Of a stretch of 64,000 bases of DNA, positions 26,590 to 64,000 are shown piece by piece. The notes beneath the pieces are model-generated. The model was not told the DNA's origin. It searched no databases and saw only the letters and a list, made by a program, of their open reading frames with translations. The position numbers were made by a program, and so were the translations under genes. The stretch is taken from the NCBI GenBank assembly GCA_002269645.1, contig NIVC01000236.1:124001-188000 (forward strand), written 5' to 3'. Every line of letters begins with the position of its first letter. Position 1 is the first letter of the stretch. The DNA is from Macrostomum lignano (lineage: Eukaryota).

Positions 26590-27142
<553 letters not shown>

Positions 27143-27455
27143 GAGGCAAAGGCTAATAAATATTGTAATTTTTCTCAGGCTTAACCGGGTAAGACTGGCA
27201 GCAGTCGCTGAATCCTGTTGGACAGCTGCCGCTAGAATGGGATCCAGTTGCGAGGCTCATTAAAAATATTTATTAAAAACACTTCTACTTTCAAAGTAAA
27301 ATAGCAAACAGGTTACGTTCGCGGTTCTGAGTCAACAAATAAATATGAGCGTAGAACTGCCACCAGTCTGCAGTCTTGAGTACAGGAAAATATAATGAAT
27401 TGCAAAAGTTACAGAAATAGCATTAGAGAGGCGGCCTTGGCGGTGCCGACGCGCC

Positions 27456-30400
27456 TCAGAGCTCGCAGACGACGCTGCCCTCGGCATCGTCCTCCACCGA
27501 GTCCTCAATAAATGCTCGATTCGTCGCGCCCTCCTCGATGACCACGGCGATCGCCGTATCGTCGCAGAATGACAGCACCTTCTTCTTGGCGTTGGTGGAC
27601 CCGTTGGTGCCGGCGCTGCGGCTGAGGATCGACTTCCGCGCCGCGGTGCCGTTGCTGCGCTGCGCCGGTCCCAGCGCCGACATCTCCAGAGACTCGCTGG
27701 ACATAAAGATGCGAAACGGCGCCGCCTCGGAGCCGCTGCCGGTCAGCCGCGCTTTCTGCAGGCTGCGCGGCAGCAGCTTCTGCGCCTCCGTGGCGGCCGG
27801 CCGCGTTGATGGCAGCGGCGGCGTCGGCGGCCGGACCTCGTCGACGACTGTGACAGTGACGCGATCTGGCGAGGCCGCCGCCGCCGCCGCCGCCGATTCG
27901 TCGGAGTCTCTGGCAGCGGCGTGCAGGCGATAGCGGCGGCTGCCCAGGGCGGGGGCGGGTGGCGGCGAGCGGGCCGTGCCTCGGAGGCGCTGCGCCCCCC
28001 AGGACGGGTTCGCCTCCTCGTCGGAGCCCGCGTCGGCATCCGCGTCGCCATCCGCTTCGACGTCAGACGGGATCAGCGCGTCCCCAGCCTCCAAGAGCAT
28101 GGAATCCTCAGCCTCATCGCTGACGCTCGAGATGCAGTAGGTGGTAACGAATTTGCCGTCCTGTGGGTGGGGAGGGGGGCAGCTCGGTGAGCCTGCGGTG
28201 TCCCCACTGTGACGTCACGCCATTTGCCACCTGTTTTATAATTCTTGTTGTCTGTCTTCTCATCTAATCTTTTCTTAATTGATGACGATTGCGAATCCGA
28301 CTTTTTCTCGCGAATTTCACGTTTCTGGAATTCGCCTCGCTAAGCCCAGCTCCTCCACCACGCCATTGTTCGGATAAAAGTCCTCTCTCTCCCCCCCCTC
28401 TCTCCCTCTCTCCCTCTCTCCCTGCGCACTGCCATGCGCATTTTTTTCATAATGGAGTGGGCGCCCCACTAGGGACTGAATTTTATAATCCGGAGTCTGG
28501 CCAGCCATGCCAACCCCAGCCTGTGCTGCATCTGTCGGGGCCAAAATTACCCCAAATTAATTTGCAGGTCTAATTACATATCTCTGAGACTCGCTGACGT
28601 GAAATTCGATTACAGCCGGCCGCCCCTCCCGCCATTCTGCTCCGGCAATCGATCAGGAGCTGCTGCCGGGCCTGCCGGACTCAAATATTGACACCGCAGC
28701 GCCCGCCACCAACTCAAGTGAGGGCTGGGGACGGGCCGCAGTGCAGTGAAACAAAAGGCGAGCCCGCCTGGGAGCATTGAGGGATTCTAAAATCGATAGA
28801 TGCTTATTTGAAGGATAAGGCAGCCCTCTAATTATAGTCTTACTGGAAGCATTGCCCAGAAATTTTCGACAATTTAAAGATGACCATCTTTTCCCTAAAT
28901 AGGATTTTATCCAAGTAAAGTAGGGAAATTACCAGCCTACTCACAGGTGCAACTCTGAGCTGGCCTCACCTGCCCAACCGTCAATTGCGCATTCTGCAAG
29001 CCTAATTAATCACTGGGTAGAACAATTCTGCTCTTTGGAAGTTGAGCATTTTGCTCTGAAGACAGTTCCGTCATTATCCTGATTGATGGGGGGAGCTGGC
29101 TTTGAAGTGGACTCGGTAGAGCTATTAATAAAAACTCAGGCGGATGCCTGCTGCTTCAAGCCACATTAGAAACATAGCAGGTGTCAGCACCGGCCACCAA
29201 TGCCTCAGCGACCTCGAATTTGCACTCACCGAAGCCGGGCAGAGTCGCTTCTCAAAGTGGAACTTTTGCTGCTCCTTTTTCTTTTTCTTTTTCTTTTTCT
29301 TTTTCTTTTTCTTCCTGTTGCTGCGTTTTTCGCCGGCTGCCTCCAAGCCCGGCGGTGGCGAGGTGCCCGAAGCTGCCGCTGCCGCCGTTGCCGCCGCCGT
29401 GGCTGCCGCATTCGCAGCCGCCGCAGCGGTTGCCGCCGCTGCCGCCGCCACCTTCGCCGCTGCGGTGGCGGACTTTGGCTCCGGCTGTGGAATCGGGGGC
29501 TGAGCTTCTGCCTGATCCGCCGTGGCACTCTCGGCGGCTTCCCCGTCGGCTCCGTTGCCCATTTCCTGCGCCGCCCCCTCAGCTGCCTCCATCGCCGCCT
29601 CCACCTTCGCAGCCTCGTCGGTTGGCTGCTCTGGCTCTGATGGCGCTGCAGTCTCCGGCTCTTCGTTCTCCTCAGTTTCGCCCGCGAGGGCCCGCCGCAC
29701 CGTCTCGGACGCGTGCACCTGGTGCTTCTCGGCGCTCAGCGCCAGCTGCAGGGCCACATGGAGCGCGCCGCCGCCAGCGAAGAGCGCCGGGACGCCGGAA
29801 GTGATGACGCCGATGGACACTGGGCCGCAGTGCAGCCCTGCACAGGCGGCCATCGGTGGTGACGCTACACCGCCGCCATTGCCGCAGTCGGCGTCGTCAT
29901 TGACATGGACTCCGCCGCATCGCACTAGGCGGATTAGGTGCTCAGCCAGGCGCAGCAGATCGCGGACGCTGCGTCGAGAGGACTTTCGCCGCAGGCCGCA
30001 TAGGAACAGGAAGAGGTCGCCGAACGCGTGGCGCATGTGGACGTCCCTGTAGCTGGCGGCGATGCTGTTGAATACGTGGTAGTGGGCGTTGGAGACGGCG
30101 TTCACCTCAAAGGGCCGTTTGACGTCGCTAAGGCAGGCCAGGCCATCCAGGCGCACGAAGAGCACCCCGGCCAGCCGCTTGTACTCTGGCTGGAACGGCT
30201 GGTCGTTGAGCAATCGGCTGGCGTAGAACTCGGGCAGGTTGGAGCGGATCATGGCCTGGTAGGAGTCTCGCTGCTCCTCCATGGCCGAGTTTAATGCCAG
30301 CATCTCGTTCTCCAGCAGCAGGTGCTCGGACTCCAGGCTGTCAAACATGCTCTGCATCATGTTCTTGCGTCTGGGGAAGCACTTCTTGACCAGCTTGGTG

Positions 30401-33400
30401 AGGTTCTCGGCGCTGGGCCGGACCCTGGGATCGTCGCTCCAGGAGGTTTCCAGCACCTGGCGGAAGGTGATGGGGATGTCCTGAAGCTGGTCAGGCCGCA
30501 GCGAGTTCTTCACAATGGCCGTGAGCAGGTCCCGGGCGTTGCTCAGGTCCTCCCTGTAGCTGGCGAAGGGAATGCTCCGGGTGAAGATCTCGTAGAAGAT
30601 CACAGCGCAGGAGTAAATGTCGGAGCTCTGGTCCGGCGGCCACTGCAGCTCGGAGCGGAGGATCTCGGGTGCAACATAGATGTCGAAGTCCAGGACCTGC
30701 TGCTCGCTGGGATACTCGCCCAGTATGGCGTCGCGGACGTACTGGATGGCCGGCCGGGCGTCTTTGACGGCCCGGGTGGTGGTTGAATAGTACATGAGGT
30801 ACTCCCAGTCCGCTAGCTTCACCGTCCACTTGCTGTCCATGAGGCAGGCGCTGGTCCGCAGCATGCCGTGCACGATGCCCTGGCTGTGCAGGTAGCTGAC
30901 AGCCTGGCAGATGTCCATCACTATGGAGCCTTTGACCGCGGGCGCCAGATCCAGCTTGGGGTTGTGCACAACCTTGCTGAGCGGGCCGCGCTCGCAGTAC
31001 TCTGACACAACAAAGAAGTCCCGCTCGACCTGGGTCAGGCCGTGGAACGCTGCCACGTTGTTGTGGTGGACGCGGTCCATCATCCACTGCAGCAGCTTCT
31101 TAGTGGAGATGTCGAGCCTCTCTTGCGATCGCTGCGTCTGCAGCAGTCGCACGCCGACGCTGGCCTCCCGGAACTTGCCCGGCCACTGCAGCACCGTGTC
31201 CGCGTCGTAATCCTCCTCGCTCTCCGCTTCATCCTCCGTCATCTGCGTGCCGACGGAGATCGTGTCGGAATCGTCCATGCGGAAGCTGCGCATTGATCGG
31301 TTGCGGCCGCGGCTGCGCGGAGCGAAGAACATGATCTCCTCGATCGGCACCAGCCACAGGTCCTGCGGAGGGGGAGGGGGAGGAGGGGGAGAGTTGCTGT
31401 CTGGCACCTGCGCGACTTTTTGATGCAGAAGCAAGTATCAACTGCCTTTGGGGCGTGCCCCACCTAACCAGCGGCTCATATGTTATACAAACTACTTTCA
31501 CTCTGCGTAAAGAGCCCAGCCCAAACCTCCTTGGTCTCTCCTGCTCCCTTGCTGTTGAGCTGTGAGCTGCTTTGCTGCCTGAAGGCTTGTCTAAAAACTA
31601 ACGGATTAACTCTCAGTGCCAGTCAAGAAAACCTGGATGGAAAATGAATGTAAAAATACAGTGTGTTGCTGAAGCTTCAGAACTGGCTCACCTGGTTGAG
31701 CAGCTTCCACTGCACGTAGTTCTGCCTGGCAATGTACGCCCCGAGGCCGCCGGCCACCAGCAGCCCGACGCCAACGGAGGCGAGCGTCGGCGCCATCCAG
31801 GACGAGTTCCGGCTCTCCGCTTCCGTCTGCTCGCGGCGCCGCTTCTCCAGCCAGAGCTCGCGCAGGAGCCGCCCACCGCAAGCGGCCTTGTCGAGCACCT
31901 GCGTCCGGACCTTCTGGTGGACAGCGTTGCTAAGCGGCACGAAATTGTTGGCGCGGATAATGCTGGCCGGCTCCGGGTCCGTGTAGAACCAGTTCAGGAA
32001 GCCATAGAACTCGGTGGCTTCATCGCACCTGGAGTTCGGGCGGAGTCCGGCTAGTGCTGAGTGCCCTATCTATTTAGTATCTTTCGGCTGTCTGAATTTT
32101 TGTTTTATAGCCCTCTCACATTAACCAGTCCTCTCTTGTCCACTCTACAGTCCCCTCTTGTCTACTCTACAGTCCACTCTATAGTCCTCTCTTGTCCACT
32201 CTACAGTCCTCTCTTGTCCACTCTACAGTCCACTCTACAGACCTCTCTTGTCCACTCTACAGTACTCTCTTGTCCACTCTACAGTCTTCTCTTGTCCTCT
32301 GGACAGTCCTCTCTTGTCCTCTCTACAGTCCTCTCTTGTCCACTCTACAGTCCTCTCTTGTCCACTCTACAGTCCACTCTACAGTCCTCTCTTGTCCACT
32401 CTACAGTCCTCTCTTGTCCACTCTACAGTCCTCTCTTGTCCACTCTACAGTCCTCTCTTGTCCACTCTACAGTCCTCTCTTGTCCACTCTACAGTCCACT
32501 CTACAGTCCTCTCTTGTCCACTCTACAGTCCTCTCTTGTCCACTCTACAGTCCACTCTACAGTCCTCTCTTGTCCACTCTACAGTCCTCTCTTGTCCACT
32601 CTACAGTCCACTCTACAGTACTCTCTTGTCCACTCTACAGTCCTTTCTTGTCCACTCTACAGTCCTCTCTTGTCCACTCTACAGTCCTCTCTTGTCCACT
32701 CTACAGTCCTTTCTTGTCCACTCTACTGTCCTCTCTTTGCCCCATCTACACGCATGTCGCTCTTGTGTCCTTTCTATATGCGAAACATGAAAAGCCTTGG
32801 CCTGCAATCAATTTAAATAATTTGTGCATATTTTATTGCTTTTAGCCTCGAAGCACTGCAATTATGAAAATTAAGCGTCGGGCTGTCCAATAGAACCAAT
32901 CCACGACATTAGAATGAAAGAATCAGCAGAGACTGCTTTTCCATTGTTATCAGACCTCACTCGCACAAAGGGCTGCTGAGTGAGGTCTGTTTGGTTAGTC
33001 AGTTTTAAGGTTCAGTTTTAAGAGGTTATCGCCCCGTGCAAATGCTGCAGCCGTCGACAGCTACATAACCCCACAGTGGATATGCAACGATTGAGAGGGA
33101 CTGGCCTTCATAAGCACACAGCATCATGTCCAATGTAGAGGCTTTAGTTCACATACGATCCCCATTGCGTCTGCTTATCCTCTGGGGCTGAATGAGACTT
33201 CTCAATGATTCTACTCTCATTGCCGGCCCAGTAGTCCTTGTTCTACTCTCATTGCCGGTCCAGTAGTCCTTTTTCTACTCTCATTGCCGGCCCAGTAGTC
33301 CTTGTTCTACTCTCATTGCCGGTCCAGTAGTCCTTGTTCTACTCTCATTGCCGGCCCAGTAGTCCTTGTTCTACTCTCATTGCCGGTCCAGTAGTCCTTG

Positions 33401-36400
33401 TTCTACTCTCATTGCCGGCCCAGTAGTCCTTGTTCTACTCTCATTGCCGGTCCAGTAGTCCTTGTTCTACTCTCATTGCCGGTCCAGTAGTCCTTGTTCT
33501 ACTCTCATTGCCGGTCCAGTAGTCCTTGTTCTACTCATTGCCTGTACAATAGTCCTTATTCTACTCATTGCCTGTACAATCGTCCTTATTCTACTCATTG
33601 CCTGTACAATCGTCCTTGTTCTACTCTCATTGACTGTACAATAGTCCTTATTCTACTCATTGCCTGTACAATCGTCCTTGTTCTACTCTCATTGACTGTA
33701 CAATAGTCCTTATTCTACTCATTGCCTGTACAATCATCCTTGTTCTACTCTCATTGACTGTACAATAGTCCTTATTCTACTCGTTACATGTGCAATAGTC
33801 CTAATTCTACTCATTGCCTGTACAATCGTGCTTGTTCTACTCTCATTGACTGTACAATAGTCCTTGTTCTACTCATTACATGTACAATAGTCCTTATTCT
33901 ACTCATTACATGTACAATAGTCCTAATTCTACTCATTGCCTGTACAATAGTCCTAATTCTACTCATTGCCTGTACAATCGTGCTTGTTCTACTCTCATTG
34001 ACTGTACAATAGTCCTTGTTCTACTCATTACATGTACAATAGTCCTAATTCTACTCATTACATGTACAATAGTCCTAATTCTACTCATTACATGTACAAT
34101 AGTCCTAATTCTACTCATTGCCTGTACAATAGTCCTAATTCTACTCATTGCCTGTACAATAGTCCTAATTCTACTCATTGCCTGTACAATAGTCCTTGCT
34201 GTTATCTAGGAAACAGACTTCCTGCTAGTATTTTCTAGGAAAAAACCCTGTAGCTGTGTGAACCCAGATCCTCTTTAAGCTTTGCTGCCTTTAGCTCTAA
34301 TCGACAAACAACTTAGGCTGCAGGAAACAATAGTGTTTATATAAAACAAGAGAAACCGTCCCATAAGACTCACCTCGCAGTCATGTTCATCTTGATGATG
34401 AAGTAGGTGTAGGTGGCGATTGGGTAGGCGTCCGGGTTCTGGGCGTCAATGAGGTGTCCAGTTAGCCGGGAGTCCATTGTGTTAGCGTAGAAGTCCATGG
34501 CCGCCTGCACGGAGGCCGGTTGCGAGGCGTCCACGAAGCTTCCGTTGGCGTTCTCAATCAGCGCGAGGCTCACGAGGCTCTCATCGTTCAGTCTGAGATC
34601 CGAGGCCGATATGTAGGCGATGGAGTTTCGCAGGCTGCTGAGCAGGGCGGTGAGCCCATCGGTACCCTGGGCGAAGAACTCAACAACTGAATTGTTCCAG
34701 TCCGGGTGTCTCCAGGTGACTTTGTTGAGCTCGCGCTCGAACTCGCCGTACTTGGCCTTCCACTCGGCTGAGAAGGAGCTCAGAGCTTGGGTGAAGACTG
34801 CGGTGGAGCCCGACTTGTCCATGCGAGCCATGGGCCGGACGGGGTTGTGGGGCAGACTCGAGTTCGGGTTCGCGTTAACAATGCCCGGGCTGTCCCAGTG
34901 CGAGGTCTTCCCCATGTAGATGTCGACCAGAGTCTGGCGGGTCAGGCGCAGCCGTGTTGCACCGAAGGACGGCGGGTGATAGGCCACCGCCACGGCGCTG
35001 TGGGAGTTCGTTGGCTTTCATTTAGCTTCTCAGCACCTCGAGGCCTCTCAACTGGCTATGTTCGGGTAAGCCTCACAAGGCTACTCAAGCCTCCCTGACA
35101 CACTCCAGGGCTACTCAAGCCCCCTGACACACTCCAGGGCTACTCAAGCGTCCCTGACACACTCCAGGGCTACTCAAGCCCCCTGACACACTCCAGGGCT
35201 ACTCAAGCGTCCCTGACACACTCCAGGGCTACTCAAGCGTCCCTGACACACTCCAGGGCTACTCAAGCCCCCTGACACACTCCAGGGCTACTCAAGCCTG
35301 TGTCACACCATATCTGTATCACACCATGCCTGTATCACACCATGCCTGCATCACACCATATCTGTATCACACCATGTCTGTATCACACCATGCCTGCATC
35401 ACGCCATGCCTGCATCACGCCATGCCTGTATCACGCCATGCCTGTATCACGCCATGCCTGTATCACGCCATGCCTGTATCACGCCATGCCTGTATCACGC
35501 CATGCCTGCATCACGCCATGTCTGTCTCCAGAGCGGCTTGTGAATGCAAAAGCAGACCTAGCGGTCGGTCCTTGCAACCAGTCCCGTGCATTGCAGTAGT
35601 CACGGGAGTTTCTCGAGAGTCTGTAGGCACGGATAAGCTGAGATCTCAGCAAACTGTAAACTCGTGCATAATTCAGCAAAAGTACACAATGAAAGCACAC
35701 ACACACACACACTCGCAAAAGGCATATCTGAGCAATTCATGCATCTGTAAATATTAGCATGGATCTTCTACACTAAGGCAGGCTATCGCTCTGACTGGTC
35801 TCGTACTTTAAATAGCGGCGATCGCTGGTCTCTACACTTGTCCTGCCGATGCTGGATGGCAATTTTTATTGTGAGGCTACTGTGAGGCGAGGGCAGGCCG
35901 GTTACTGCTGGCGGAATTAAACCCGTCACGGCCCATTAATTAATGAGTTGTTGCAGAGACTGGCGCGGCTGAGGGTGGCCATCAGGCCAGAGCTCAGGCA
36001 TACGGCCCAGCCTAATAGCGGCTCAGGGTTTCAGCTCAATTGGCTATTTGAACAGAGCTTACGGTGCCAAAGCTGGGGGCGGAGCGGAGGGCGGGAGGCG
36101 CTGTCATGAGCCAGCAGCCCCATGGCGGCGGAGCGGAGGGCGGGAGGCGCCGTCATGAGCCAGCAGCCCCATGGCGGCGGAGCGGAGGGCGGGAGGCACC
36201 GTCATGAGCCAGCAGCCCCATGGCGGCGGAGCGGAGGGCGGGAGGCGCCGTCATGAGCCAGCAGCCCCATGGCGGCGGAGCGGAGGGCGGGAGGCGCCGT
36301 CATGAGCCAGCAGCCCCATGGCGGCGGAGCGGAGGGCGGGAGGCGCCGTCATGAGCCAGCAGCCCCATGGCGGCGAAGCGGAGGGCGGGAGGCGCCGTCA

Positions 36401-39281
36401 TGAGCCAGCAGCCCCATGGCGGCGGAGCGGAGGGCGGGAGGCGCCGTCATGAGCCAGCAGGCCGTTGCTGAGGGCAAAACAATGAAGTGGAGAAAAAAGA
36501 CTCAGCAAGGTGGGCTGGAAAAAAACAAACTTTGTAGCAGCGGATCAGCGGCTAAGTTTCAATTAACAGAGTCCTCAGAGCTGCCGCTGACGTGGGAACT
36601 GCTGCATGGGCGGATCTCGACATACACAAGTTTCCTGTTTCGCTAAGAGTTAAAAAGTCAGCTCTGCTTTCTGTCAAAGTCTGATTCGCGATTCTGCCAA
36701 GCTTATTTCGGAAATCATTGTGAGCCGGTCGGGTGACAAATCTGTCCTAGTCTTAACTCTGACTTAGAGTGAGCGATGCGAGCTGTTTGATGAGCTGAGG
36801 GCTTTCATCTTTGTTGGAGTTCTCGAGCCCAACTGGCTTGCTTTGCCTGGCTATTCAATTACTGAACTGCCTGTCTGCCTACCTGCCTACCCACCTGCCT
36901 ACCCACCTGCCTACCCATCTGCCTACCCACCTATTCACCTGCCTACCCACCTGCCTACCCACCTGCCTACCCACCTGCCTACCCACCTGCCTACCCACCT
37001 GCCTACCTAACTACCTACCCACCTACCTACCTAACTACCTACCCACCTACCTACCCACCTACCTACCCACCTACCTACCCACCTACCTACCCACCTACCT
37101 ACCCACCTACCTACCCACCTACCTACCTACCCACCTACCTACCTACCCACCTACCTACCCACCTACCTACCCACCTACCTACCCACCTACCTACCCACCT
37201 ACCTACCTAACTACCTACCCACCTACCTACCTAACTACCTACCCACCTACCTAACTACCTACCCACCTACCAACCTACCTACCCACCTACCCACCCATCT
37301 ACCTACCCACCTATTTACGTGCCTACCTACCTACCTACCTACCTACCTACCTACCTATCTACCTACCGATCAACCTACCCAGTACCTACCCACCAATCTA
37401 CCCACCTAACTGCCTACCCACCAATTCACGCACCTACCCACCTATCTACCTATCCACTTACCCACGTACCTACCTAACTACCTACCTACCTACCCACCCA
37501 CATCTGACCTAAAAGTCACCAGTTCCTGCTTTCTTTATCAATCATATTCTCCACCCTTCATCGTTTTTCTGTCGTTATATAGATATTAATTTCCAGCCTC
37601 AGGACCACCAGAGACGAGTCCTTTTTCTGGATCAAATCCAATTTTCTGAAAAACAACTACAAACGGAACTAAAAAGAGACAGGCGCCACCTCAAGCTAGC
37701 AGAGCCGAGAGCTCACCCGCGGAAAAGTATGCTCAAGAAAAAACAACATGGCTTGTGGCCTGTTTTCAGGCTGAGATGGAGCAGCCCGCCTCTCCCTTCT
37801 CATTCTTCAATGTTGCTTTTACGAGCTAAAAAGCAGCCTAAAATCCCGCGCTGCTACTTCCAGATCCCGGCATGAAAGCAGCACTTTTGCCTGCTTTGGG
37901 TCTTAGACCTGCCCCTTTTGTTTTTGCAGCCACAGCACAAAAGTCAAAGTGGATTGCTTGCTCTGACGGGCTGCACCGGCACAATGAGTCAGTTTTGTAT
38001 ACTTTTATGCTTTTTATACAATCCGACCAAACACTGACTCGCGAGCCTGCAGCAGGATAGAACTGACAGAAAAGAAATCTTCAACAATATCTGCAGATAA
38101 AAACTTGTCACAGATTCCAATGAACTCTATGCGATAGATGGATTAGATCTGTAGACTAACAACAACAAAATGCTCAGACCAGCAATCCATTCTACTCCAG
38201 TGCATGTAGGCTAGACTAGCAATCCATTCTACTCCATTGCATTTAGGCTAGACTAGCAATCCATTCTACTCCAGTGCATTTAGGCTAGACTAGCAATCCA
38301 TTCTACTCCAGTGCATGTAGGCTAGACTAGCAATCCATTCTACTCCATTGCATTTAGGCTAGACTAGCAATCCATTCTACTCCATTGCATTTAGGCTAGA
38401 CTAGCAATCCATTCTACTCCAGTGCATTTAGGCTAGACTAGCAATCCATTCTACTCCAGTGCATTTAGGTTAGACTAGCAATCCATTCTACTCCATTGCA
38501 TTTAGGCTAGACTAGCAATCCATTCTACTCCAGTGCATTTAGGCTAGACTAGCAATCCATTCTACTCCATTGCATTTAGGCTAGACTAGCAATCCATTCT
38601 ACTCCAGTGCATTTAGGCTAGACTAGCAATCCATTCTACTCCAGTGCATTTAGGCTATACTAGCAATCCATTCTACTCCAGTGCATTTAGGCTAGACTAG
38701 CAATCCATTCTACTCCAGTGCATTTAGGCTAGACTAGCAATCCATTCTACTCCATTGCATTTAAGCTAGACTAGCAATCCATTCTACTCCAGTAGTGCTT
38801 GTAGGCTAGACTAGCAATCCATTCTACTCCAGTAGTGCTTGTAGGCTAGACTAGCAATCCATTCTACTCCAGTAGTGCTTGTTGGCTAGACTAGCAATCC
38901 CTCGCAGAGTCGCAGAGACAAGGTGGAGATCCCGCCAGGAGCTCACCCCGCCAGCGTGGGGAACATCTGGCTCTCCGGGTAGCTGCTGTACTCCGAGTCC
39001 TTCATGATGGAGTCGCTGCCGGCAAACAGCTGGTAGTCGGGGTCGGCCTGGTTGTTGTAGCCCCGCTGGAAATTGAGCCGGCCGGTGCCGCTGCCCACGC
39101 CCGAGTAAACGATGCTAACGTCCGCCCAGGCGCTGCGGTGCGCACTGTAGCGGTCGCAGACGGCGATGTACACATTCTGCGGGAAGGTCGCCCCGCTGCC
39201 GCGCACAGTGATGGCTTCGGCCGAGCCGGCGGCTATCACGGTTACCATGCCAACCATGTTCAACAGCACAGCGCCTGTCAT
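27456..39281 (-). CDS. Single-pass receptor of about 1377 aa: signal peptide - PstS-type phosphate-binding ectodomain - TM - kinase-homology domain - coiled coil - degenerate guanylyl cyclase domain - low-complexity tail
   Basis: Phase-consistent exons 39281-38947, 34997-34374, 32028-31692, 31362-29230, 28160-27456 (4134 nt). PstS motifs: [50 protein letters not shown]: [23 protein letters not shown]: [42 protein letters not shown]. Cyclase-like: LFVRLDG, FGD, GLHCGPV, FEKR...TY. Confidence 0.88.
32125..32735. repeat. 22-bp minisatellite (with 11-bp half units) in receptor intron 2
   Basis: Tandem cactctacagtcctctcttgtc. Confidence 0.95.
33205..34200. repeat. 32-bp minisatellite grading into a related 30-bp unit (receptor intron 2)
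   Basis: tctactctcattgccggcccagtagtccttgt, then tctactcattgcctgtacaatagtccttat. Confidence 0.93.
35080..35520. repeat. Adjacent 29/30-bp and 16-bp minisatellites (receptor intron 1)
   Basis: ctactcaagcccctgacacactccaggg-type units to about 35298, then catgcctgtatcacgc units. Confidence 0.9.
36075..36460. repeat. 49-bp GC-rich minisatellite (receptor intron 1)
   Basis: catggcggcggagcggagggcgggaggcgccgtcatgagccagcagccc, period 49 (36121, 36170...). Confidence 0.95.
36865..37500. repeat. (CCTA/CCCA)-derived microsatellite (receptor intron 1)
   Basis: cctacccaccta-type repeats. Confidence 0.93.
38178..38900. repeat. 37-bp minisatellite (receptor intron 1)
   Basis: Tandem ctagactagcaatccattctactccagtgcatttagg. 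Confidence 0.95.
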
Positions 39282-51196: not shown

Positions 51197-54100
51197 TCAG
51201 CCCTGGCAGCTCAGACAGGCCTCCTTGTTCTCCAGCGAGCAGAGCATGTCCTTCTGGTTCTGCAGGCGGAGCTCCTGCATAGCGGCCTCCGCCTGCTTGG
51301 TGTCGCCAGCCGGTTCGGAGGCGTCGTTCTCCTTGCCCTTGACCCGAACCCTGGCCTTGTCCACGGTGAACTGGATTGGCTGGGCGGCCGGCCTGGTGCG
51401 CAGGTAGTACATGCCGGTCTTCAGGCCGCTGCGCCAGGCGAAGAAGTGCATGCTGGTGATCTTGGCAAAGTTGGGCTGGGCGATGTGCAGGTTCAGGCTC
51501 TGGCTCTGGTCAATGTAGGCGCCGCGGTCGGCGGCCATTTCCATGATGCGCTTCTGCGGGATCTCCCACACCGTCTTGTACAGGTCCTTCACCTCCTGCG
51601 GTATGCCATCGATGCTCTGGACGGAGCCCTGCGGAGTGACAATGGGTCAGCTGGGATAGAACATGTGCATAGAACATATAATACTTCGTATCTAATTGTC
51701 CTTTTCAGAGTCGAATTTCAGAATGGCCGCTCAAAGGCCAATGCGCCAACCAGGATGTCTCTAAATAGCTAATTATTGATGCATACGACTCACCTGGTTA
51801 GCCACGATTGCAGTCTTCAGATCGTCTGACCAGAGACCCAGCCTGGTGAGGTCGCGCAGCAGATGCGGATTAACCACCTGGAATTCGCCGGACAGAACCC
51901 GCCTGCTGTACACATTGCTAGTGTAGGCCTCAATGCTCTCATTGTTGCCGAGAATTTGAGCTGTGGAGGCGGTAGGCATCGGGGCCAGCAGGAGGCTATT
52001 GCGCAGGCCGTACTTGGCAATGTCCGCCCGCAGCTGAGTCCAGTTCAGGCCAATGTCCGGCCTGTCCGGCGTGGCCACGGACCACATGTCCGGCTGCAGG
52101 ATGCCCTTGCTGGCCGGGCTGCCCGGATGGGTCTCGTGCGGCCCGAACTTGCGGGCCTCCATGCAGCTGGCCTCCAGCGCTGAATAATAGATGGTGGCGA
52201 AGATGTCCTTGTTGAGCTGGGCGGCCTCCGGGGACTCCCAGGCGTAGCGCATCAGCTGGAAGGCGTCCGCCAGACCCTGCACGCCGATGCCGATGGGCCG
52301 GTGGCGCATGTTGGAGCGCTCGGCCTCCGGCACCGGGTAGAAGTTGATGTCGATGATGCGGTTCAGGTTGCGGACAACAACGTGGGTCACGTGACGCAGC
52401 ATGGCGAAGTCGAACTGTCCGGGCTCCTTCACGAACCTGGCGGATGGAGAGAGTGGATTATCAGTCAATACGGTCCCGAGATGGTACCCAGGCGGTTAGG
52501 CCAAGAAGCGTCACTTGCGTCACCCCAAAATCGTTTCAGAGTCAGGTAAAATAGGAGAGAAATGACTCTAAACGACTATAAAACGGCGAGATGTCATGGC
52601 ACAAGTCCTCAAAAAGTCGTCCAAGAATCACTTTGAAGCGTTTGGTTTATTGTCTGCGGCTCTGGGGCCGTAGAGTCGAATTTGAGGCGTGCTAGAGTCG
52701 CTGTGTAGTGTGTCATCGAGTTTCTTGAAGCCGTTTGCGTTGCTTAGGCCGGGAATTAGTCACGTCTCCAGCGCTTCAGTGGCGTTCTTCAATCGCTAAA
52801 AGTCGCAGAAGCGCTCTAGCGTCAGTGTAGAATCGTTTGTGCGTCACTTCTGAGACGCTCTGGATGGAGTGTAGCTTATTGAACTGCACTCAAGTAACCT
52901 GTTGAGTTAAACACCAACGCAACGATTCTTAGACGACTCTTTCACGATTCTACAACTCGCGTGACGCACCTGCGACGTAACAGTCGCCTCTCCGTCGTAT
53001 TAGACGAGTTTGAGTCGTTAAAAAGCCACAAGAGTTGCCGTAGAGTCACTAGAGCCACTAGAGAGTTGTTTTCAACAGCTTTTAGGCAACTCTTGTCACG
53101 GTACCGTTTTTAACGTGAGCGCGGTCACACCTCTAATAAGCAAAAAAACTCGCAGACGGAGCAAATTAAATTACAAACCATTTCTCACCTGTTCAGTGCT
53201 ACGCTGGCCAGATTGCACACTGCCACCTCATCTGGGCTGCTGTATTCGACAATCTCCGTGCACAGGTTTGAGCACTTGATGGTGCCAAGGTGCTGCTGGT
53301 TGCTCTTGGAGTTGCACGAGTCCTTGTACAGCATGTAGGGCGTGCCAGTCTCGATCTGGGCCTCGATAATTGCGTACCAGAGCTCCTGGGCGCGCACTGT
53401 CTTGCGCCCCTTGCCGGCCGATTCGTATGACTCGTACAGCTTGACGAAATCCGCGCCCCAGGCATCGGACAGGCCGGGACACTCGTGCGGGTCCATGAGG
53501 GTCCACTGGCCGTTGGACTCGACGCGCTGCATGAAGAGGTCCGGCACCCAGAGCGCGTAGAACAGGTCGCGGGCTCGATTCTCATCTTTGCCGGTGTTCT
53601 TGCGCAGGTCGAGGAATTCGAACACATCCGGGTGCCAAGGCTCCAGGTAGATGGCGAATGCACCGGGCCGCTTGTTGCCGCCCTGGTCAACATACCTGCC
53701 GATGGGGGGCGAGTGGCTTATGAGTTGGGTTAAATTCTGAGGATCCCTGCACACACTATCTCCTCTCTGAGGATCCCCTGCATACATTATCCCCTCCCTG
53801 AGGATCGCCTGCACATACTATCCCCTGCCTGAGGATCCCTTGCACACATTATCCACTCCCTGAGGATCCCCTGTACACATCATCTCCTCCCTGGGGATCC
53901 CCTGCATACATTATCCCCTGCCTGAGGGTATATAAAACCCCCTGCGAATATTATCCCGTGATCTGGGGATAGCATGATTAATCTTCAACTTTAGCAGTAA
54001 AGGGAAGTAAGAAACAAATAGATATTATAATTACCTGGCCGTATTGTTAAACACCCTCAGCAAGGGCACGATGCCATTCGAGGTGCCATTGGTGCCGGCA

Positions 54101-57100
54101 ATGTAGGAGCCGGTGCTGCGAATGCAGTGAATGTTGAGGCCGACTCCGCCAGCAGACTTGGAGATGAGGGCGCACTGCTTCAGAGTGTCGTAGATGCCCT
54201 CAATGCTGTCGTCCTTCATGGTGAGCAGGAAGCAGGAGCTCAGCTGCGGCTTCGGTGTGCCGGCATTAAACAGAGTAGGACTGGCGTGGGTGAACCACCT
54301 GTGCGACATGAGCTCGTAGGACTCGATGGCCGCCTCCACGTTGCCGCAGTGGATGCCGCAGGCCACGCGCATCAGCAGGTGCTGCGGCCGCTCGGCGACT
54401 CGCTTGTTAATCTTCAACAGGTAGGACCTCTCCAAGGTCTTGAAGCCGAAGTAGTTATAGTGCAGGTCGCGCTCAAAATCGATAGCGGAGTCAAGGCGCT
54501 CGCGATTGGCCAGCACGAAATCCAGGAAGTTGCGCGTCACCATAGGCGAGTGCAGGCCAGTCTTGGGATTCACGTACTCGTACAGGTCAGTCATCACCTC
54601 GGAGAACTTTGCCTTGGTGTCCTTGTGCAGGTTGGACACGGCAATGCGAGCGGCCAGAATGGCATAGTCCGGGTGCTTCGTTGTCATCGTGGCGGCCGTC
54701 TCAGCTGCCAGGTTGTCCAACTCGGAGGTTGTGACGCCCGGGTAAAGCCCGCTAATCACCTTGCGCGTAATCGCCGCCTGCGCATTGAAAGGCAGAGCCA
54801 AGATACTACAAGTGCTGAAGTACATATATGCTACTGACTACTAACTAGTAGGCAATGTGAAGGCACTTACCGGCTCAACATAGTCTTCATTCAAGCCGCT
54901 GCAGAGGCTCTGAATGCGTGCAGTAATTTTATCATAGTGCACTTTTTCACGCCTCTGATCTAAAAATTTTGGTGGGAATTGAAAATGCCATTTAGTTGGT
55001 GCAAACTTGAAATAACTAGGCCAGTTCATATAATTACCATTGAATTAAGAGCAGAGCCTAAATCGGGTACATAAATTATCAGAACTCTTAGTTTTATTAC
55101 ATGTATAAATCAATGTATTGACTGGTAGCAGTTTTGGGTTTCTAGCATTGTAAAAATGACTTAATTTCAAAGAAAAAATGTTGTTTCATTTATATTAGTC
55201 AAAAAGATTTTTTATTTCTATTATACTAACATTTTCACAAGATTGTATATTAAACCAAGTATTTAATGTCTATTCTAACAATATATACTCAAATATTCAA
55301 AAATCATATATCTCATTGCTAATACTAGGGAATTTAGTTAGATTTTTTAAGTTTTTTGTTTAATTTTAATTTTAATTTTGTTTAGTTTTAGTTAATTTAA
55401 TAGATCTCATTTACAAAATTAACACTAGTGTCGTGATCCTTTACTTTTGCACATTTTTATTTTTATAATTATTTTCTTGGAAATCTGCAGTTCAAATGGG
55501 TACATAATAATGTGGCTTGAAATATTTGTCTCTCATATATCAGTTAGGTGGGTAAACTTAATTAGTAGTCAATTAGTGATTGGTGGATATAATAGACTTA
55601 CAACTCAAAGCAGTCACACAACTAATATCATGGCTAGCTAGCTGTCTATCTGCACTTACAACCATTGTTTATTGTTGCTTTTCATCTATACAGCTCTTAT
55701 CAATATTAACAGTTTTATTAGTTAGCAGTTAACAATCTATTATCAATATCTCTATTGAATCTATAATAATATTCATCATTAGATTGAATAGAAGCTACAA
55801 TTTTTAAAAGAAAAAATTAAATATGAGAAAGTAAAAGATTGATAAGACACTTTACTTTAGAAAACTGGTCAATTAATAAAAGTTGGAAAACTTTGGTCTA
55901 ATTTTGGTATAGTGCAAAAAATTATAGTTTTGTCCAGATTAGAAATATAAGCCTAAAATTTTAAATAGAAACATAGTTAATTACTCAGCATATTTTTATA
56001 CAAAAATTTAAAATCTATATACAATAATTCTTATCACATGTTCAATAACTCTTACTAGATCATTGCTTATTTCTCAGAGTTCTAAGAGTGTTGTGAAGAA
56101 GGTCAGAAAGTCAGGAATTGGAATTTATGCAAAAAGGAGTACTAAGAATAAGTGCCATGACCTTCTAATCTTAGTAACACCCAGACTAGAAAAAAAGTAC
56201 ATATACCAATACCAGTAGGACCACTCAGGTCAAAATTATATACCAGATGCTACCAGAATGCTATTAAGAACACTACTAGAACCAGTGTTGGGTACTAGTC
56301 TATTAATAAGTGTTAACCCATTAATAAGCATTAAGACTTTAAGTGTTAAGATTTTTCTTTAAAATTATTGGACTGCCATTAAGATTTTTTGAACTAACAG
56401 ATTAAAAAAATTGCATTAATAATTTTGTGAGTTAATAACAAATTTATCATTAACATTAATGGCAATGTCAATGACCAAAGATGCAAAGAAAGAACAAAAA
56501 TTTAAGTCTGAAGAGAAGTTACAACCAGATATATTAAATGAATTTATTTAAATGCCCAATTAATCTCAATTAATCAAATTAGTCAATGATCATGCAAATT
56601 AACAATTTCTTATTATGAACTTTAATTATGAATTATGCTTGTAAAATATTGTGAACTTTATTGCTTGCGTGTGAGCATGGATTGCTTTGATTTACTTCTT
56701 CTTTAATCTTTCGTAACTTTCTGCTACACCTGCTAATGCTACAGAAACAACCTTTATATTTGTATTTTATTATTAACTAATTAGCTTTCAAGTTTCAAAT
56801 AAATAAGATACTTCTTTTACCATATGCTTACTTTTAGTAGTATTATAAATACAAGTTTTTAAAATTATTATTTATTACTTTTTAGCTTGTAGATCACTTA
56901 GACAACCTTTGTGTTTTGCTAAAAAGGTGGAAAAGCAAAGATAGTGCATTATGGAAGTCTGTTTAAAAAAAGTGCAAGATTTCTATATTTTTGTGTTAAC
57001 TTTAATGGATTAATGCTTATTAATGACTATTAGTTAACTTTCAGTTAACTTGACAAAATTAAGAGTTAATAAGTTAGGCCTAAGATTTTCTTGTTTTAAC

Positions 57101-63031: not shown

Positions 63032-64000
63032 TCAGTGGCAAGAGGCCTTGGACAGAAAGTGGACGACCACCCTGCCTTGATCTTCCGGATTTCCGCCGGT
63101 GACGCCATAGCAACCGTTGTTGCCATGGCAATACGAGCCGCCGCCGCCTCCCGGCTGGTGGCTGGCCAGGCCGGCGCCGCCCCCGCTGAAGCCGCCGCCA
63201 CCGCCGCTGCCTCCAAACGCGTTGCCGCCGCCGCCGCCTCCGCCGAAGCCACCGCTGCCGCCGGAGTTGAGGACGCCGGCCACTCCGCCCAGCCAGGCCT
63301 CGCCGCGGCTGCCGCCGCCGTCCCCGTCGGCAACGGAGCGCCGGTTGTCCGGGGCGCGGCCGAGCCAGCCTGCGCCGGCGCCGCCGAAATAATAGACACT
63401 GGAGGCGTTGGCGACGTTCACGATGCCCGGCTGGCCGTTGGTGCCGCCGAAACCGTAAAAGCGGGAGTTGCAGCCGCAGGGCGTCGTGTCCGAGCCGCTG
63501 GTTCCGTTCTGGCCGGGAATACCTGCTCAGCGGATGCAAAATCATTTCATCATTTGGCCATTTAGCAGTGCCCCAGCTGACTTTGCAATGCCTTAATCTT
63601 GCAGTCAATAAGCTTAGCAGTCAGTCCAGCTCACCGACATCCCAAAGGTCCCTCCGCCGCCGCCGCCAGCTATGATCAGCGGCTGGTCGCCGACCTCAGT
63701 GCTGACGTACACGAAGCTTCCGCCGCCGCCGCCAGCTCCGGCTTTCTCGTGCGCCTGCGACGGGTCGCCGCCCCGCTGGCCAACCACGATGGCCAGCTGG
63801 GTGCCGGCTGTCAGGTTGAAGCTTCCCGCCATGAAGGCCCCTAGGCCGCCGGCTGTCACAGTCGGAGGCGTTGAGCTTGTCGGAGCTGAGGTACCGCCTT
63901 TGGCGCCGAAGGCCTCGATTCGATAGCAGCCGGTTAGGGAGATCGTCAGGGCCTGAATGGTGCCGTTGGGGCCTGTGCTCGAATCTGCAATTAAAATCAA
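63032..64000 (-). CDS. 3' part of a protein with an ALK/LTK-type glycine-rich domain (5' end outside the window)
   Basis: Exon 63984-63635: GTIQALTISLTGCYRIEAFGAKGG..GLGAFMAGSFNL..GTQLAIVVGQRGG..GGGGGSFV..PLIIAGGGGG. Exon 63522-63032: [39 protein letters not shown]. The splice phases disagree by one base. Confidence 0.75.

Follow-up and report, generated by a model that had tools for sequence, protein, structure and literature searches.

A phosphate-binding-protein receptor of Macrostomum lignano with a degenerate, predictedly inactive guanylyl cyclase domain

Introduction

The way in which animal cells detect phosphate in their surroundings is not yet well understood. Bacteria bind phosphate with the periplasmic protein PstS, and folds of the bacterial periplasmic-binding type also occur in animal receptors: Venus kinase receptors, for example, are single-pass invertebrate receptors in which a type I Venus flytrap module, of just this fold, is joined to an active tyrosine kinase. 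Receptors of the receptor guanylyl cyclase (rGC) lineage offer a further precedent for unusual outputs, for NPR-C binds ligand without making cGMP, its kinase-homology domain (KHD) and its cyclase domain having been deleted. In class III cyclase dimers (adenylyl cyclase C1/C2, soluble guanylyl cyclase (sGC) alpha/beta) one subunit gives the two metal-binding aspartates and the arginine of the PRYCLFG motif, and the other gives the glutamate, cysteine, asparagine and second arginine. The same half-site split underlies the obligate heterodimer ODR-1/DAF-11 of Caenorhabditis elegans (PMC5225109). Here we analyse a gene of the flatworm Macrostomum lignano, found in a stretch of 64,000 bp (contig NIVC01000236.1, positions 124,001 to 188,000; hereafter the window), whose predicted product joins a PstS-type phosphate-binding ectodomain to a pseudokinase KHD and to a cyclase-like domain from which six of seven catalytic residues are gone.

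With the rGCs GC-A/NPR1 and GC-C (PDB 9bcv and 8fx4) the M. lignano receptor shares type I topology, the juxtamembrane LW..P/W.E.I motif, an HGN-type loop in the KHD, a signalling helix and a C-terminal class III fold. It differs from them in having a type II periplasmic-binding protein (PBP) domain, PstS, instead of ANF_receptor, in the loss of six of the seven cyclase residues, and in a KHD that is without the beta3 lysine and the Gly-rich loop. Judged by its sequence the receptor is of the rGC lineage by descent, yet two defining features of rGCs, the ANF-type ectodomain and the catalytic set, are missing, and it ought not to be classed with the guanylyl cyclases. Its nearest evolutionary relatives are what we call canonical PstS-rGCs (from Owenia, Priapulus and Trichinella), which have the same PstS-to-cyclase architecture, the same Arg-for-Lys and DWE substitutions in the KHD and the same phosphate-ligand residues, but whose own FSDIVGF, KVETIGD and RYCLFGDTVNTASR motifs are intact and which do not carry the LQWPGKW motif described below.

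Unlike NPR-C, the PstS family retains both cytoplasmic domains, folded but, as far as can be predicted, catalytically dead; the nearest functional analogies may be pseudokinase receptors and NPR-C. From bacterial PstS (1ixh, 2z22), with which all phosphate ligands are shared bar one Thr-to-Ser exchange, the receptor differs in that the domain is, in an animal, part of a membrane-anchored protein with signalling domains in the cytoplasm, whereas the bacterial protein serves an ABC transporter. Venus kinase receptors resemble it in using a bacterial-type periplasmic-binding-protein fold as ectodomain, but the M. lignano domain is a type II PBP and is apparently attached to no active enzyme. ODR-1 and DAF-11, finally, are likewise rGC subunits individually short of catalytic residues (PMC5225109); each, however, keeps one half-site that complements the other's, so that together they are active, whereas the M. 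lignano receptor has lost both halves.

Results

Six of seven catalytic residues are lost from the cyclase-like domain

An initial annotation of the window, made from the sequence alone, had described two enzyme domains at 29690-31200 as apparently dead. In our gene model this interval holds the KHD, a linker and a cyclase-like domain, and every motif quoted by the annotation is present. The cyclase-like domain scores 26.9 bits against Pfam Guanylate_cyc (gathering score 21.9), compared to 176.7 bits for an ordinary rGC. The best PDB match across KHD, linker and cyclase is GC-A/NPR1 (E = 2e-26); descent from receptor guanylyl cyclases is therefore secure.

Catalytic columns were read with four alignment methods, taking in phmmer alignments to GC-A (9bcv), GC-C (8fx4) and Chlamydomonas CYG12 (3et6), hmmalign placement against a hidden Markov model (HMM) of active cyclases, and a MAFFT alignment with 21 relatives. 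All alignments agree that the series D-E-D-R-C-N-R has become R-H-D-A-F-H-Q. The linker, the domain and the residues are as follows (window positions):

30169..30333, minus strand: coiled-coil / signalling-helix linker (aligned to the GC-A linker; AlphaFold helix)
29689..30168, minus strand: class III cyclase-like domain, residues 831-990 (Pfam, phmmer, hmmalign, MAFFT, AlphaFold, Foldseek)
30151-30153, minus strand: first metal Asp (FSDIVGF) replaced by R836; motif FVRLDGL at 30139-30159
30028-30030, minus strand: guanine-specifying Glu (KVETIGD) replaced by H877; motif MRHAFGD at 30016-30036
30016-30018, minus strand: second metal Asp kept, D881
29785-29787, minus strand: Arg of PRYCLFG replaced by A958
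29779-29781, minus strand: guanine-specifying Cys replaced by F960
29758-29760, minus strand: transition-state Asn replaced by H967
29746-29748, minus strand: transition-state Arg replaced by Q971; third cyclase motif at 29746-29787

The annotation had reported the loss of the first metal Asp, the guanine-specifying Glu and the Cys, Asn and Arg, and phmmer, hmmalign and MAFFT concur on each. Its description of the domain as dead is right for six of the seven residues but passes over the second metal Asp, which is retained. No catalytic residue was recovered at a shifted position, and a register shift is rejected on the concordant placements of four independent alignments. Asp838 of FVRLDGL sits two columns past that of the first metal Asp. 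Given that 15 family members with a canonical cyclase keep all seven residues in that same hmmalign alignment, and given the weak Pfam score, the loss is not a matter of chance or misalignment. With six of seven catalytic residues gone a homodimer should make no cGMP, and the receptor is, very probably, not a cyclase.

The fold, by comparison with the chemistry, appears to be kept. AlphaFold modelled the linker and cyclase-like domain with a predicted local distance difference test score (pLDDT) of 90.1, and of 88.4 when the alignment was restricted to degenerate relatives; secondary structure is identical in the two models and only a Gly/Asp-rich insert is disordered. The linker is predicted to form a helix (model residues 2-25, pLDDT ~95). 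Foldseek places the cyclase domains of sGC and GC-A at the top of the matches to both models (TM 0.73-0.80). A Pfam score above the gathering score, the match to GC-A and the modelled fold together identify the domain as a true class III cyclase homologue.

The kinase-homology domain is a pseudokinase typical of its family

The KHD and its altered kinase motifs are as follows:

30334..31200, minus strand: KHD, residues 487-775 (Pfam PK_Tyr_Ser-Thr, E = 1.2e-25; alignment to the GC-A KHD)
31171-31191, minus strand: LQWPGKF in the place of the Gly loop
31147-31149, minus strand: Lys of VAIK replaced by Arg, R504; motif SVGVRLL at 31141-31161
30862-30870, minus strand: HRD replaced by HGM, the HRD Asp being M599; motif IVHGMLRTS at 30850-30876
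30802-30810, minus strand: DFG replaced by DWE; motif KLADWEY at 30799-30819

The Asn of the catalytic loop is Ala and no GxGxxG is present; the Asp of DFG is kept (D617). Catalytic Lys and HRD Asp are both gone, and the domain thus falls within the sequence definition of a pseudokinase. The annotation had also called this domain dead, on the grounds of the Arg, HGM, DWE and missing Gly loop. These features are real but not peculiar to the gene: HG[N/M] in place of HRD is the usual state in rGCs (GC-A has SHGN aligned to HGM), and a motif census of 82 sequences shows the VAIK Lys replaced by Arg, and DFG by DWE, throughout the family, members with a canonical cyclase included. Since the state of the KHD is common to rGCs or to the family, it is not what sets the M. 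lignano gene apart; the dead cyclase is. The family alignment shows that the KHD invariants are kept in the M. lignano receptor.

PstS receptors fall into a canonical and a degenerate class

A HMMER search with residues 1-996 as query gave 181 cluster representatives at E <= 1e-30. Domain mapping shows that more than 100 of these combine PstS with a KHD, and most of them end in a cyclase domain or a region resembling one. By their score against the active-cyclase HMM the members separate cleanly into two classes. Canonical members score 190-276 bits, have FSDIVGF, KVETIGD and RYCLFGDTVNTASR intact and keep seven of seven residues (examples are P0025, P0036, P0038, P0046, P0048, P0049, P0056, P0057, P0072 and P0128); those with species names are Owenia fusiformis A0A8J1UIS0 (annelid), Priapulus caudatus XP_014672517.1 and Trichinella pseudospiralis KRZ27753.1 (nematode). 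A tardigrade member is partly degenerate. The canonical PstS-rGCs of protostomes are candidate phosphate-activated cGMP receptors; we found no publication that describes them, only automatic names.

Degenerate members score 12-108 bits (the M. lignano protein 46), and their catalytic columns are filled differently in each protein. Named members come from M. lignano, Tubulanus (a nemertean), Haliotis (three species), Argopecten, Ostrea, Pinctada, Mercenaria and the chiton Liolophura. Most degenerate proteins, and no canonical ones, carry the signature LQWPGKW / IG(L/V)RL at the start of the KHD; in M. lignano it reads LQWPGKF and SVGVRL. In a neighbour-joining tree based on the KHD only (Poisson distances, 100 bootstrap replicates) no canonical protein descends from the common ancestor of the LQWPGKW group in 81 replicates, and the M. 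lignano protein nests inside the group in 76. A second degenerate group, to which Haliotis asinina P0028 and Mercenaria P0032 belong among others, may or may not go back to the same loss as the LQWPGKW group (20 of the 100 replicates). The hmmalign census and MAFFT answer a question raised by the annotation, namely whether orthologues also lack the catalytic residues: they do. What had been presented as one odd receptor belongs to a clade that is old and rich in species, and the predicted dead cyclase is an old inherited state in flatworms, nemerteans and molluscs – an old spiralian clade – rather than a lesion private to this gene.

Haliotis asinina P0176 and P0028 are members of both degenerate clades within one species; each is on a contig of 58,286,999 bp, and they may lie on the same chromosome. 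A genome can thus hold several paralogues of the family. In M. lignano the protein search recovered only two entries, both fragments: P0002, and P0099, a paralogue that is 68% identical. No canonical-cyclase paralogue of M. lignano was found among eight matches to the family profile, and a query with the ectodomain gave almost only bacterial PstS.

Public labels for the family ('retinal guanylyl cyclase 2-like', 'ANP receptor 2-like' and similar) mislead on both ligand and activity. Many public gene models begin exactly at the boundary of exons 1 and 2 (approximately residues 112-125 of the M. lignano protein), and automated annotation seems to miss exon 1 systematically, and with it the signal peptide and half the phosphate pocket. 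Full-text literature searches found no description of rGCs with a PstS ectodomain or of a pseudo-cyclase rGC family; the PstS-KHD-pseudo-cyclase family is apparently undescribed.

Constraint has moved away from the cyclase domain

Mean pairwise identity within each class, region by region, is as follows:

PstS domain: canonical 36%, degenerate 39%
Juxtamembrane segment: canonical 22%, degenerate 34%
KHD: canonical 30%, degenerate 45%
Coiled coil: canonical 50%, degenerate 32%
Cyclase or cyclase-like domain: canonical 64%, degenerate 20%

Compared to its own degenerate clade, the M. lignano protein is 19% identical in the coiled coil and 18% in the cyclase-like domain. In canonical members 56 cyclase columns are conserved at a level of at least 90%; in degenerate members only 16 reach even 60%, all of them structural (Gly, Pro, Leu, His, Ala or Ser), none catalytic and all, bar one Met/Leu difference, matching the canonical consensus. 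Column conservation revealed no new conserved motif in the degenerate cyclase-like domains that might hint at a new activity. Constraint, as measured on these alignments, is thus inverted between the classes, having moved in the degenerate clade from the cyclase domain to the KHD and juxtamembrane segment: ligand pocket, pseudokinase and cyclase fold appear to be kept, cyclase chemistry is not.

The ectodomain is a PstS domain with an intact phosphate pocket

Pfam finds a single domain in residues 1-432, PBP_like_2 (74.3 bits, E = 1.8e-20); ANF_receptor, the type I PBP of other rGCs, was not found in this region. The best PDB matches of the ectodomain are PstS proteins (1ixh, 2z22), which align over 313 residues with E ~1e-24 to 1e-26 (best 3.5e-26). 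Residues T10, F11, S38, D56, R135, D137, S139, G140 and T141 of Escherichia coli PstS correspond to T32, F33, S64, D90, R170, D172, S174, G175 and S176 of the receptor, and lie in the following motifs:

39180-39200, minus strand, exon 1: GSGATFP (alignment to E. coli and Yersinia PstS)
39081-39101, minus strand, exon 1: GVGSGTG (same alignment)
39009-39026, minus strand, exon 1: FAGSDS (same alignment)
34802-34828, minus strand, exon 2: ARMDKSGST, equivalent to R135/D137/S139/G140/T141 of E. coli PstS

Across 14 relatives the ligand residues of exon 2 are invariant, the sole exchange being a conservative Thr/Ser at the T141 position, and all nine are invariant or conservatively exchanged in both classes. 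The ectodomain is thus probably a phosphate binder of the PstS type whose pocket is intact, the likely ligand being phosphate or a similar oxyanion.

PstS domains turned up in two other settings. A protist transcript, P0178 (eukprot EG_transcript_3874, 791 aa), encodes a PBP_like_2 domain approximately 30% identical to the receptor ectodomain; eukaryotic PstS domains are not necessarily animal-only, and the animal ectodomain may be an old inheritance or may have been acquired horizontally. Long proteins in which two to four PstS domains stand in tandem (P0029, of 2386 aa, and P0058, P0086, P0098, P0102, P0106, P0108, P0126, P0134 and P0161), which are without a KHD, represent another unusual use of PstS.

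Gene structure and protein layout

The gene lies on the minus strand and has four exons, with GT/AG at every intron and an uninterrupted frame encoding 1177 residues (junctions were read directly). Beyond the domains given above, its parts are:

38947..39281, minus strand: exon 1, with ATG, signal peptide (residues 1-22) and N-terminal part of the PstS domain (open reading frame (ORF) and GT donor, Pfam PBP_like_2, PstS alignment)
34374..34997, minus strand: exon 2, middle of the PstS domain (tblastn with P0001, P0002 and P0003; AG/GT junctions; PBP_like_2 E = 7.8e-11)
31692..32028, minus strand: exon 3, C-terminal end of the PstS domain, Cys-containing stalk and transmembrane helix (P0002 match, junctions)
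31728-31799, minus strand: transmembrane helix, residues 397-420 (24-residue hydrophobic segment in the translation)
29125..31362, minus strand: exon 4, juxtamembrane segment through stop codon
31201..31362, minus strand: juxtamembrane segment at the start of exon 4, with rGC-type motif and Ser/Thr/acid-rich stretch (translation)
29125..29688, minus strand: C-terminal tail of about 185 low-complexity residues, and stop codon (translation)

The PstS-type domain spans residues 23-372. A hydrophobic N-terminus of 22 residues and the one hydrophobic segment of 24 predict, from the translation, a type I single-pass topology; W435 in the juxtamembrane segment is invariant in the family alignment. 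The M. lignano UniRef fragment P0002 ('PBP_domain domain-containing protein') is a 99-100% match in three separate minus-strand blocks, and its 100% match identifies the species.

The tail (29128-29688, minus strand) is acidic, then Ala/Thr-rich, and then has a run of 13 Lys from an (AAGAAA)n microsatellite; tblastn of relatives gave no homologue matches to it. A consensus GTGAGT donor near 29226, some 100 nt before the stop, may splice off the last 33 codons, in which case there would be a further intron and a different C-terminus. Introns 1 and 2 are mostly tandem repeats (32126-32737, 33209-34198, 35079-35525, 36074-36460, 36867-37501 and 38176-38900, with periods of 22/56/78, 30/92, 30, 16, 49, 8/12 and 37 bp), and a 555-bp (AGAC)n microsatellite lies downstream of the gene at 26590-27144; it is these repeats that give rise to long spurious ORFs.

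Other observations

Elsewhere in the window, 51197-54825 (minus strand) holds a multi-exon gene for the large subunit of ribonucleotide reductase, whose ATP-cone, Ribonuc_red_lgN and Ribonuc_red_lgC domains are distributed among four blocks of ORFs. At 63614-64000 (minus strand) an ORF running off the end of the window encodes an ALK/LTK glycine-rich domain (Pfam PF12810, E = 3.5e-11), and may belong to a gene for an ALK/LTK-like receptor. The searches also returned P0004 (518 aa, ENA), a strong rGC (Guanylate_cyc 176.7 bits) in which the motifs read KVATIGD and RYLLFGETVNTGTK (Glu to Ala, Cys to Leu, Arg to Lys); its substitutions mark it as a putative cyclase of altered specificity or one that has partly degenerated, and it has no relation to the PstS family.

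Discussion

The model that we favour overall, and consider reasonably probable, is of a non-catalytic receptor for phosphate (or another oxyanion) that would signal through its KHD/pseudo-cyclase dimer. Such a receptor would be a constitutive dimer, held together by the coiled coil (signalling helix) and the pseudo-cyclase. Binding of phosphate, or of a similar oxyanion, would close the PstS clamshell; closure would be transmitted via the transmembrane and juxtamembrane segments and would rearrange the KHD/pseudo-cyclase dimer; and the output would be an altered protein-protein interaction at the surface of KHD and juxtamembrane segment, not cGMP. That the output is specifically of this scaffolding kind is plausible, if somewhat doubtful. 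Scaffolding is favoured because constraint has shifted to the KHD and juxtamembrane segment and because coiled coil and cyclase-like domain are poorly conserved – a point that counts for non-catalytic signalling because a conserved partner would demand preservation of the interface.

That same point bears on the possibility, which we regard as rather unlikely, that the receptor is a dominant-negative or modulatory subunit, pairing through coiled coil and pseudo-cyclase with a competent rGC (a canonical PstS-rGC or one of ANF type) to lower or gate cGMP upon phosphate. The elements needed for dimerisation, signalling helix and cyclase fold, are kept with high AlphaFold confidence, canonical PstS-rGCs of the same architecture occur in protostomes, and heterodimers of rGCs are documented in ODR-1/DAF-11 (PMC5225109). 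However, coiled coil (32%) and cyclase-like domain (20%) are the least conserved parts of the degenerate clade, which is unexpected with a conserved partner; among the named members no species is shown to carry both classes, and the two paralogues of Haliotis asinina, P0176 and P0028, are different and both degenerate. Heterodimerisation of the complementing kind, as in sGC alpha/beta or ODR-1/DAF-11, would have the receptor supply half of one shared site in a pair that makes cGMP. There is precedent in rGCs that each have a partial catalytic set and work only when paired (PMC5225109), and D881 is retained; yet the metal half reads R836/D881/A958 and not D/D/R, the base and transition-state half reads H877/F960/H967/Q971 and not E/C/N/R, and neither half is conserved across the degenerate clade. 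No complementary half-site patterns were found among its members: both metal Asp are kept only in Haliotis, and no partner keeping E/C/N/R occurs in the same named species. With both half-sites broken a complementing partner is most improbable, and what is left is dominant-negative or non-catalytic signalling. The annotation's suggestion of an obligate partner of an active rGC accordingly falls away, no complete site being expected on pairing; its alternatives of a dominant-negative or a scaffolding role both remain, with scaffolding favoured by the shift in constraint though unproven.

It is also very unlikely that the receptor is an unorthodox active enzyme, in which relocated residues (Asp838, His877/His967) rebuild the active site of a nucleotide cyclase or a related one, or the KHD works as an atypical kinase. 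Migration of catalytic residues is a known phenomenon among pseudoenzymes, Asp838 is two residues past the lost metal Asp and the DFG Asp (D617) is kept, but the substitute residues are not conserved, the set differs with each degenerate member, no motif is specific to the clade, and the KHD is without Lys, catalytic Asp, Asn and Gly loop all together. Just as unlikely is a decaying, non-functional copy, one of many recent M. lignano duplicates left to drift. A cyclase-like domain as diverged as this one (26.9 bits in Pfam), a low-complexity, microsatellite-encoded tail and the existence of the 68%-identical paralogue fragment P0099 would all fit decay; against it stand four exons with an intact frame and canonical junctions, the retention of all phosphate-ligand residues and KHD invariants in a confidently predicted fold, and orthologues in four named phyla/classes that share the degenerate state, which amounts to long-term retention.

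Several considerations weigh against the favoured model of a non-catalytic phosphate receptor in an old degenerate clade. The tree is a simple neighbour-joining tree with moderate support, many of its sequences are truncated gene models, often without exon 1, and the taxon spread is drawn from approximately 20 named proteins, a minority of the family. The higher conservation of the degenerate KHD may partly reflect a younger, tighter clade set against a paraphyletic canonical one. Pseudoenzymes sometimes stay active by way of relocated residues, and here Asp881 is retained with Asp838 nearby. Finally, we know of no downstream partner for any rGC KHD acting alone, and the output step is therefore speculative.

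We put forward tentatively the broader proposal that there is a conserved spiralian class of phosphate receptors, each combining PstS with a double pseudoenzyme (pseudokinase and pseudo-cyclase), whose signalling would consist of conformational scaffolding alone. It is their cGMP output that defines receptor guanylyl cyclases; a large, long-retained clade with a dead cyclase would show that their scaffold lends itself to signalling without catalysis, for which pseudokinase receptors would be the closest parallel. In protostomes, canonical PstS receptors, which would make cGMP, and their degenerate counterparts would represent a natural paired experiment: the same sensor with two outputs. If the proposal is true, an output mode free of second messengers evolved from receptor guanylyl cyclases, and M. 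lignano – in which RNAi and transgenesis are available – would provide a genetically tractable entry to extracellular phosphate sensing in animals.

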